Positions 62,451 through 64,000 of a DNA stretch of 64,000 bases are shown piece after piece. A program made the translations under genes and the position numbers. The notes under the pieces were generated by a model. It was not told the origin of the DNA. It worked only from the letters and a program-made list of their open reading frames with translations, and searched no databases. Each line of letters begins with the position of its first letter. Within the stretch, counting starts at the first letter, position 1. Source of the DNA: Mytilus trossulus (lineage: Eukaryota); contig NC_086386.1 in the NCBI RefSeq assembly GCF_036588685.1, forward strand, positions 24,800,001 to 24,864,000, written 5' to 3'.

Positions 62451-62881
62451 TGTAGGGAGTAACTAAAGCATTACTGGAGAAGTCGCCCCCCCCCCCCCCC
62501 CTAATTGTCCCAGCTGACCTAAGAGTCTGTCCCTCTTCAACTGTTGACGTTATACAACAATTAATTTTCCAGTGTTGCATCAGATTTTTTGTATCATAAA
62601 ATAAATTTTTACATGGAACATTTGTGATGTACAGTTAGTAATGGCGGAGATATTCATATTATAGCAATAAGGTGTATGCAAAGCACAATAATTAATAATA
62701 AATCAACTAATCATCTATGGATGGAAGCATACTGATAAGTTAAATTACTTTATTTTTCACACAGCATCGACATAGAGTGATAAGATTTAAATAACGATCA
62801 GAAGTCAAGAATTTTTATATTTCACTTGTTTGGGTAGATACATGTACATTATGTAACATAACACTTATCTTGACATTATAC

Positions 62882-63130
62882 AGTAAGTAAGTAAGTAAGT
62901 AAGCAAATAATTTATTATAGTGTCACGATCCAATATATATCATCATATACAATATAAAAAATCTTTAAAACCATATTAGATTCATGCCTTTAAGACATAT
63001 GAGACACTTTCATCCTTTTTCAACTGAAAAAAATATATACTATAATGTAAAAGAAATATTTAAATAATAAAACATGTACGCAAGTATGGGAAGTAAATAC
63101 AGCCCAGAAATTTGCGATATTAGAGCATTC
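62882..63130 (-). repeat. (GTAA)n tract, probably the 3' tail of a LINE on the minus strand
   Basis: Minus strand AATAAA followed by (TTAC)n. Confidence 0.4.
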
Positions 63131-63403
63131 TAATTTATCAATGAAATTATTGAATTATATAAGTATAAAAAAAAATCTTATTTTACGGAAGGTATAGGGA
63201 TGATGCGTTTATAATAGCTCATTCATCACGAGAAGAAATTGAGGAGTTTTTTTTAAATAGCAAATGATCATCACCCTTAATAAAGTTTACGTTTGAAATT
63301 TCAATCGAAGAAATAATTTTTCTCGATACAGTCGTACATAAAGGGTTGAGGTTCAGGAATACCGGTATCCTTGATATTACATGTAAGAGCTACACCAAAC
63401 CTA

Positions 63404-63574
63404 ACTAAATATCACTTCTCGTTATGAAATATAAATAAAGCTTTACGAAAACATTATAGAAAACTAGTTAGCAATGTGAAATGTAGGGAGCTATTTCCAA
63501 AACCACCAATGGTGGCGTAAAGTAGACATCGGAACTTAAAAGAAATACTGACTAGATCGGTAGTCAAAGCTTAG
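63404..63574 (+). pseudogene. C-terminus of a Penelope-like RT ORF
   Basis: One frame reads TKYHFSL*NINKALRKHYRKLVSNVKCRELFPKPPMVA*SRHRNLKEILTRSVVKA*, matching the PLE YH...KH...LF..PP.VAY.R..NL...L.RS motif. Confidence 0.6.
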
Positions 63575-63593
63575 TACAATATGAAGGATTGGG

Positions 63594-63693
63594 TCAGGAC
63601 CCCTGATGAAGCACCCACTCTTCATATGAGCCACGGAATATTATAGAGTTTGTCCTATTCTGTACTGCAGAAACACGATGTGTTGGGTCCTGG
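63594..63693 (+). ncRNA. Atypical type I hammerhead ribozyme with expanded stem II, family D
   Basis: Stem I UCAGGACCC/GGGUCCUGG; CUGAUGA 63603-63609; 60-nt stem II closed by GCA/UGC; GAAA 63670-63673; stem III ACAC-GAU-GUGU; GUU triplet; A.A mismatch at position 10.1/11.1. Confidence 0.7.
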
Positions 63694-63734
63694 AGAATAG
63701 GCAGACGTGGCTGATAGGTACTTCCAGACATTCA

Positions 63735-64000
63735 AAATGACACGTACATTTTAACACTTATAATCTGCTTAAAAGAAAAACAAACTTTTATGTTCTTTTC
63801 ATTTTCTTTACATGTATGGTTTCGTGTGATACGATCAGTTTTAAGACAAAAATTGAAAATTACATCAAAATAAGACTGAAGAAGTTTTTGGTACTAGTCT
63901 CATTTTTGACATGTATCAGAGACAGTATAGTTGGATTGCAATTACAAACTATTTTAATGACTGCCTCATTTTACAGAACTTAGTCATTCAAAAGAAAATC
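63735..64000 (+). repeat. Third, more diverged copy of the C1qDC far-upstream region
   Basis: Aligns with about 30286-30532 (TTCGTGTGATACGATCAGTTTTAAGAC is identical) and, inverted, with about 59115-59335. Confidence 0.75.

Follow-up and report, generated by a model that had tools for sequence, protein, structure and literature searches.

A type I hammerhead with a long stem II insert in the 3′ untranslated region of an endonuclease-less Penelope-like element from Mytilus

The window, a 64,000-nucleotide stretch of a Mytilus trossulus contig (NC_086386.1), carries near its end a complete type I hammerhead motif with a long stem II, which lies just past the stop codon of a reverse transcriptase (RT) reading frame. 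The best explanation, which we hold to be fairly probable, is that this is the 3′-UTR hammerhead of a dead copy of a young, endonuclease-less Penelope-like element (PLE), and that pairing of the 3′ tail of the element with the stem II insert makes a fold that does not cleave, or one that holds the cleavage ends. The family to which the copy belongs is called family A here.

The hammerhead and the copy that carries it

The hammerhead, read from the sequence, occupies 63594-63693 of the forward strand and comprises the core, three helices and a GUU site. Stem I begins 19 nt past the RT stop codon TAG (63572-63574). The features of the copy, with RNA letters for the ribozyme, are as follows.

63079-63408, forward strand: RT fragment with YGRYRDD motif, frameshifts and stops; matches L031 6003-6326 at 91% (blastn)
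63402-63574, forward strand: C-terminal end of the RT ORF, with two in-frame stops; ends in ...LKEILTRSVVKA and TAG (63572-63574)
63594-63602, forward strand: stem I 5′ strand, pairing with 63685-63693 over 9 bp (8 Watson-Crick and one G.U)
63603-63609, forward strand: core C3 to A9, CUGAUGA; position 7, the sole variable core position, is C in one subfamily
63610, forward strand: unpaired A between A9 and G10.1, common to all family A copies; U in families B and E
63611-63668, forward strand: stem II, a 3-bp base (GCA 63611-63613 with UGC 63666-63668) around a 52-nt insert
63611 with 63668, forward strand: the G10.1-C11.1 pair, intact
63620-63625, forward strand: CUUCAU in the insert, complementary to the core AUGAAG (63606-63611); a possible core-sequestering hairpin
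63629-63661, forward strand: segment X, three insert blocks (AGCCAC 63629-63634, GUUUG 63648-63652 and CCUAUUCU 63654-63661) complementary to the 3′ flank
63633-63640 with 63656-63663, forward strand: the insert's own hairpin, ACGGAAUA/UAUUCUGU
63669, forward strand: extra A between C11.1 and G12, non-canonical; only family A needs a 1-nt bulge on the 3′ side in the search descriptor
63670-63673, forward strand: GAAA, being G12, A13, A14 and the first nucleotide of stem III
63673-63676 with 63680-63683, forward strand: stem III, ACAC/GUGU with loop GAU; A15.1-U16.1 is A63673-U63683
63684, forward strand: U17 of the GUU site, with predicted cleavage after it
63685-63693, forward strand: stem I 3′ strand, which opens the predicted 3′ cleavage product
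63694-63712, forward strand: segment Y, 19 contiguous nucleotides of the 3′ tail that pair with X
63713-63739, forward strand: rest of the 3′ tail, with the element end ...CATTCAA(CA) at about 63736-63739

An earlier reading of this DNA, made from the sequence only, had claimed the core, the stems, the GUU site and a 60-nt insert, and each was found exactly where it had been placed. The spacing from A9 to G12 is 60 nt (63610-63669), and the predicted cut lies 52 nt upstream of the 3′ end of the element. The G10.1-C11.1 pair (G63611-C63668) is present, with an unpaired A on each side of it, towards A9 and towards G12. An unpaired nucleotide between A9 and G10.1, together with a conserved G10.1-C11.1 pair, is a hallmark of PLE hammerheads (PMC4209133), so A63610 is the usual bulge and only A63669 is unusual; no precedent for an extra A on the 3′ side, before G12, was found in the accessible literature. 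The same reading had taken the copy to be decayed, on account of two stop codons and an A.A opposition in stem II. The stop codons are indeed present, but the A after A9 and the A before G12 occur in all family A copies and are therefore not decay of this one.

A relaxed type I descriptor was used for detection: stem I of at least 6 bp, CUGANGA, a stem II closed by G-C and allowed a 1-nt bulge on either side, at most 150 nt of insert, GAAA, stem III of at least 3 bp and any nucleotide other than G at position 17. On both strands of the 64-kb window this gave exactly one match, the hammerhead at 63594-63693, and in 100 block-shuffled windows it gave none, by which a chance match is ruled out. 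The Rfam hammerhead models (RF00163, clan CL00010) gave no match here at the gathering score or at E ≤ 10, and at both the gathering score and permissive E-values they detected none of the hammerheads of these families in the window and 16 related loci. Rfam misses the motif because of its long stem II (58-60 nt); such a miss is to be expected and is not evidence against the motif. The analysis thus supports a genuine hammerhead of a PLE, and it means that standard hammerhead searches, whether with Rfam or with descriptors of fixed size, miss whole families.

The copy in the window is a dead fragment of a young Mytilus PLE family. It is 5′-truncated, starting at 63079, has an internal deletion of about 266 bp relative to the full unit, and its last 57 codons (RT fragment 63404-63574) contain the two in-frame stops. 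From 63402 to 63739 the window matches a full unit (L031 6593-6930) at 97% in blastn, and the uninterrupted ORF of another family A copy has an identical C-terminal end. A protein annotated in Mytilus edulis is 98% identical to the RT of the element. With a family A query of 327 bases, at least 40 copies were found in the genome, at 83-100% identity. More than 30 copies have flanks that cease to resemble one another directly behind ...CATTCAA(CA), and the end of the element is therefore placed at about 63736-63739. Upstream of the copy, the window contains a run of about 15 C (62486-62502) and a short (GTAA)n microsatellite (62884-62903).

Full-length elements were recovered and their domain order was read as ORF1, spacer, RT. 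The full family A unit is about 3.4 kb long, with a spacer of about 400 bp and an RT ORF of about 640 aa that has a basic stretch at its start and ends in ...ELFPKPPMVAYSRHRNLKEILTRSVVKA. ORF1, upstream of the RT, is about 210-255 aa long (at L031:7210-7833 about 207 aa from the first ATG), and no relatives of it were found in Pfam or Atlas. The genome has only about seven full-length 5′ ends. A partial copy lies ahead of each of them, and often an inverted truncated copy lies beside it. These partial tandem (pLTR) and inverted 5′-truncated arrangements are the usual ones for Penelope elements. A search of genome contigs for related loci gave no match.

An endonuclease-less clade and the variety of its hammerheads

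In the RT ORF, RVT_1 was the sole Pfam domain found. A search of 5.8 billion proteins returned more than 100 homologues, nearly all of 640-650 aa, from Mytilus, Pinctada, Saccostrea and Argopecten, being mussels, pearl oysters, oysters and scallops, and from further assemblies. All share the same N-terminal and thumb regions, and their C-termini stop 2-10 aa past the linker motif ...AY.RH.NL.D.LT.S; no GIY-YIG domain is on record among these close homologues. The uninterrupted family A ORF stops 8 aa past this motif, and 13 relatives on metagenome contigs also stop shortly past it. Longer homologues, at 30% identity or less, do carry GIY-YIG. When the full units of five families were searched for GIY-YIG with Pfam and tblastn, only the linker motif was matched by the endonuclease parts of endonuclease-bearing (EN+) proteins. 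The family is therefore endonuclease-less, ending exactly where canonical elements continue into the GIY-YIG domain.

The sequence-only reading had proposed an endonuclease-less or permuted PLE family, the intact copies of which would not read through into GIY-YIG. Uninterrupted ORFs do stop past the linker and, together with the more than 100 homologues, bear out the first of the two proposals. The second did not hold, the N-terminal endonuclease being absent: where a permuted PLE of the Naiad/Chlamys type has an N-terminal GIY-YIG domain and a CxC linker, the N-terminus here is a basic stretch followed by PLE N-terminal motifs. No endonuclease similarity was found in ORF1 or in the spacer. 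The canonical EN+ PLEs (Penelope/Poseidon, Neptune, Nematis and Hydra) were rejected on the absence of the C-terminal GIY-YIG domain, and a retrozyme is ruled out by the autonomous, coding nature of the element.

A quick maximum-likelihood tree united the 20 bivalve-type sequences in a single group (SH-aLRT 100). Apart from these, a second RT-only group nests with endonuclease-bearing sequences, and one of its members ends in (CCCTAA)n directly after the stop. An RT-only relative at 29% identity (L077:3330-3482) has a long (CCCTAA)n run about 30 nt past its stop, and is therefore regarded as telomere-attached like Athena and Coprina. Loss of the endonuclease inside EN+ clades and telomeric clades without endonuclease have both been described (PMC8557442). 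Athena and Coprina resemble family A in being RT-only PLEs with a hammerhead near the 3′ end, but they are telomeric and end in reverse-complement telomeric repeats (PMC8557442), whereas family A copies are interstitial (that of the window lies at 24.86 Mb in a contig of 81.8 Mb), and unrelated DNA follows their CATTCAA(CA) ends. Family A also has the upstream ORF1. It is by position and 3′ ends that it is set apart from Athena and Coprina. No mention of an interstitial, bivalve-wide clade of RT-only PLEs was found in the accessible literature. RT-only Penelope elements can evidently thrive away from telomeres, which makes their mode of integration a question of interest.

At least four further families of the clade (B, C, D and E, with 38-44% protein identity) are present in the same genome, and every one of them has a hammerhead just past the RT stop. 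These hammerheads, and that of a more distant relative, are laid out as follows.

Family B: type I, GUC site, a 5-bp stem II base enclosing 126 nt (136-nt stem II insert) and a 7-bp stem III
Family E: type I, GUA site, 36 nt enclosed in stem II (46-nt stem II insert)
Families C and D: circularly permuted type III, with GUC 50-100 nt upstream of CUGAUGA and a loop 1 of 40-78 nt
Metagenome relative (L067:3470-3625, 41% identity): type I, with a loop 3 of about 100 nt

The window copy is not alone in having a large stem II insert, as its sisters have ones of 46 and 136 nt. Sister families in other mytilids, known as proteins, show 53-71% identity. All three helices covary across the families. Stem I is GGACCC/GGGUCC in A and B, CAAUCC/GGAUUG in E and GGCCC/GGGCC in L067; the stem II bases are GCA/UGC, GGUAG/CUACC, GGCGG/CCGCC and GGAUU/AAUCC; and stem III is ACAC/GUGU, ACACGAA/UUUGUGU, ACGCUA/UAGUGU or ACACUGC/GCAGUGU. 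The unpaired U after A9 in families B and E has nothing opposite it. The layout of the hammerhead follows the RT tree, in which A, B and E form one subclade and C and D another. Stem III is also long in families C and D (L054, L055, L056, L057, L058 and L059). One of these loci additionally holds a canonical minimal type I hammerhead belonging to another element (L057:396-439; Rfam Hammerhead_1, 28.4 bits against a gathering score of 34).

In a sister clade (L069 and L092) a compact minimal hammerhead lies upstream of the ORF (L069:782-820 and L092:336-405, both weak Rfam HH9 matches), and the expansions therefore look derived. That the ribozyme is kept while large insertions shift between helices, and while even the topology changes, argues for selection on the ribozyme. 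A conserved motif of about 45 nt that is not a hammerhead was seen right past the stop in L069 (3400-3445), L072, L082 and L092.

Hammerheads in Penelope elements, the bulge after A9 and RT-only Penelope elements were already known. "Atypical type I variants" in mussel Penelope elements have also been mentioned in passing (PMC7229834). What is new is that insertions of such size occur in stem II, loop 1 or loop 3 among members of a single clade, that an extra A precedes G12, that tail and insert are complementary and, as far as the accessible literature goes, that there is an interstitial RT-only clade. The closest known systems are the PLE hammerheads of Cervera and de la Pena (2014, PMC4209133), which are likewise of type I, lie in the repeated 3′/pLTR part of the element, have the unpaired nucleotide between A9 and G10.1 and the conserved G10.1-C11.1 pair, and are without recognisable loop-loop contacts. 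The published metazoan examples are minimal, with a helix II of 6-8 bp and a helix III of 0-2 bp, and are palindromic and thought to act as dimers (PMC4209133). The hammerhead of family A differs from them in its structured 58-nt stem II, the extra A before G12, the GUU site and its invisibility to Rfam; its 4-bp stem III is stable, so that it is monomer-capable. Discontinuous type III hammerheads with very large inserts were reportedly described by Martick et al. in 2008 in the 3′ UTRs of rodent Clec2 genes. There too the core tolerates a long insertion in one helix, within a 3′ UTR, but the helix, the topology and the host context are different and there is no link to a retroelement.

Pairing between the 3′ tail and the stem II insert

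The complementarity between flank and insert, which the sequence-only reading had also claimed, is real. Segment Y (63694-63712) is contiguous and complementary to the three blocks of X, and the pairing overlaps and excludes the insert's own ACGGAAUA/UAUUCUGU hairpin. Formed together with stem I, X-Y would be a pseudoknot; formed without stem I, it makes a long hairpin (63626-63715), the tip of which holds stem III and the cut site. The duplex energies of the type I families were compared with those of 500 dinucleotide shuffles of the flank, and the hammerhead-compatible nested fold was compared with the minimum free energy (MFE) fold; all values are nearest-neighbour energies, which ignore hammerhead tertiary structure and pseudoknots.

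Family A: insert-flank duplex -27.3 kcal/mol, shuffles -18.4 ± 3.6, 10 of 500 as good; hammerhead-compatible fold 9.2 kcal/mol less stable than the MFE without the tail and 16.6 with it; stem I lost from the MFE with the tail
Family B: insert-flank duplex -23.9 kcal/mol, shuffles -18.3 ± 3.3, 32 of 500 as good; hammerhead-compatible fold 2.0 kcal/mol less stable than the MFE without the tail and 8.6 with it; stem I lost from the MFE with the tail
Family E: insert-flank duplex -5.5 kcal/mol, shuffles -6.1 (sd 1.7), 305 of 500 as good; difference of 0 both without and with the tail; stem I kept, the MFE being the hammerhead

The X-Y duplex dominates the family A MFE. The gap seen for family A without the tail arises because CUUCAU (63620-63625) pairs with the core AUGAAG; this pairing is in the MFE fold both with and without the flank, although its significance is not established, and analogous core complements of the CUUCAU type exist in families B and E. 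Pairing of the X-Y type is present in two of the three type I families (A and, weakly, B) and absent in E. It is thus somewhat beyond chance, to a modest degree, and not universal in the clade.

In the least-changed copy (L065, from a metagenome) all 19 X-Y positions are Watson-Crick. The three subfamily-defining changes (63696, 63694 and 63657) are all A>G opposite U, giving G.U with the pairing kept, and changes that break X-Y occur in single decayed copies only. At 63704 other copies have A, and their CAAAC/GUUUG block is thereby Watson-Crick throughout. No compensatory double changes in X-Y were found among the family A copies (83-100% alike), the family being too young to give any. The pairing is possibly under constraint, and it offers a mutable handle for asking whether cleavage is regulated.

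A mechanism that would accommodate these features can be outlined. In transcripts running through tandem or partial-tandem copies, the ribozyme would cut after U63684, and the downstream RNA would then begin with the 52-nt tail. Once made, the tail could form 19 bp with the insert of stem II, in its 3′ half, and CUUCAU in the insert could also pair with the core. The most likely result of these pairings is a rod-like fold that is more stable and does not cleave, which would limit self-cleavage or hold both cleavage ends together. In the hammerheads of viroids and retrozymes, the strands can instead take part in a more stable extended duplex that holds both cleavage ends in this way (PMC7229834, PMC7761336). 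Those RNAs are small, non-coding and circular, whereas the family A motif lies in the 3′ UTR of an autonomous 3.4-kb element.

X-Y might instead coexist with stem I, as a pseudoknot that stabilises the active hammerhead and replaces the contact between loops 1 and 2. Stem I, being open-ended, lacks a loop 1 and with it the usual tertiary contact; Y follows the 3′ strand of stem I without a gap, so that X-Y could stack on stem I; and the pairing is stronger than that of the shuffles. It does, however, destroy the insert's own hairpin, and the family E hammerhead has a compact, self-sufficient fold without any such pairing. Hammerhead pseudoknots are known as short loop-loop contacts and are not known to take the form of 19-bp helices. 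A catalytic pseudoknot is less likely than the non-cleaving rod-like fold, and we regard it as improbable.

The complementarity could also be unrelated to control of the ribozyme, being either a 3′ hairpin recognised by the RT, with cDNA starting about 25 nt downstream, or an accident of a single young family. All copies share a fixed 3′ end, about 21-24 nt short of which the hairpin 63626-63715 stops, and a PLE that has been studied starts reverse transcription internally, near a stem-loop downstream of its hammerhead (PMC11167929). The modest significance of the duplex and its absence from family E would fit as well. The presence of a tail-insert duplex in family B too (with 32 of the 500 shuffles as good) and the preservation of pairing by all the subfamily-defining substitutions speak against this explanation, which we consider rather unlikely, and the rod-like fold is still preferred.

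A bolder extension of the preferred reading is that the elements form an undescribed, species-rich bivalve clade of interstitial endonuclease-less PLEs, in which the hammerhead has been rebuilt with long insertions and the tail-insert pairing is a selected toggle between cutting and non-cutting folds, holding the cleavage ends. Taken as a whole this is speculative and we would put it forward only with considerable doubt. If true, the toggle would yield tail-first partial-tandem copies, the hallmark of Penelope insertions.

Core conservation and evidence on cleavage

The role of hammerheads in PLEs has been an open question since 2014, and PLE hammerheads cleave poorly in vitro. Three departures from the canon are fixed in all family A copies, namely the extra A 3′ of C11.1, the 3-bp stem II base and the GUU site, and the activity of the family A hammerhead is therefore uncertain. 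The family has spread all the same, which would be in keeping with a relic that has lost catalysis and is simply passed on with the element. Insertion was unaffected by hammerhead mutants in the one PLE examined biochemically (PMC11167929), so that activity was dispensable for insertion in vitro in that case.

The state of the core points the other way. All 11 invariant positions are kept in young family A copies, and the sole core change among at least 40 copies is at the free position 7, so the claim that other copies conserve the hammerhead core is upheld for the young ones. Older copies (83-85% identity) have decayed and have quickly lost the core; taken by themselves they are uninformative on constraint, and the speed of the loss suggests that the active lineages are constrained. 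In addition, one full-length copy starts 5 nt from the cut site. On balance a dead relic seems unlikely.

RNA data were of little help with the position of the ends: three raw runs gave 3, 1 and 0 reads on the family, too few for RNA ends to be read, and the contigs of a fourth run cover the stretch, although contigs cannot show ends. The 5′ boundaries of genomic copies are more informative. With a family B query spanning the cut site, the match of one full-length copy begins at query position 201, the first nucleotide past the cut, and at L044 a 59-nt family B tail module begins at unit position 1, beside an inverted copy. Of the seven or so full-length copies of family A, one (L040:165) has its start at unit position 6, 5 nt past the cut and behind 4 filler nucleotides, and it too adjoins an inverted copy. 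There is thus one such case in family A and there are two in family B, the later counts being taken from reported match coordinates. That boundaries should fall on one specified position, among a handful in a 600-nt query, is unlikely by chance. Copies starting at the cut site link cleavage to the RNA that serves as the template for copying. Judged by these boundaries, cleavage in vivo is probable in family B, and there is a hint of it in family A.

Some further observations were made on family B, which is without any ORF1. In perfect arrays, at least 4-5 complete units of 2564 bp follow one another head to tail, and the 659-aa frame is uninterrupted in every unit (L064, at G000:C27:1-10000; G000:C12:16982229-16994425; C12:18454806-18467002). 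Unlike the usual partial-tandem Penelope arrangement, these arrays are compatible with reverse transcription of more than unit length. A stretch of 37 nt identical to the last part of the family B 3′ tail lies between two family A copies (L031:5854-5890, on G000:C7), where it adjoins the 3′ end of one copy and precedes the next, 5′-truncated one. This suggests either template switching between RNAs of different families or insertion into a family B tail.
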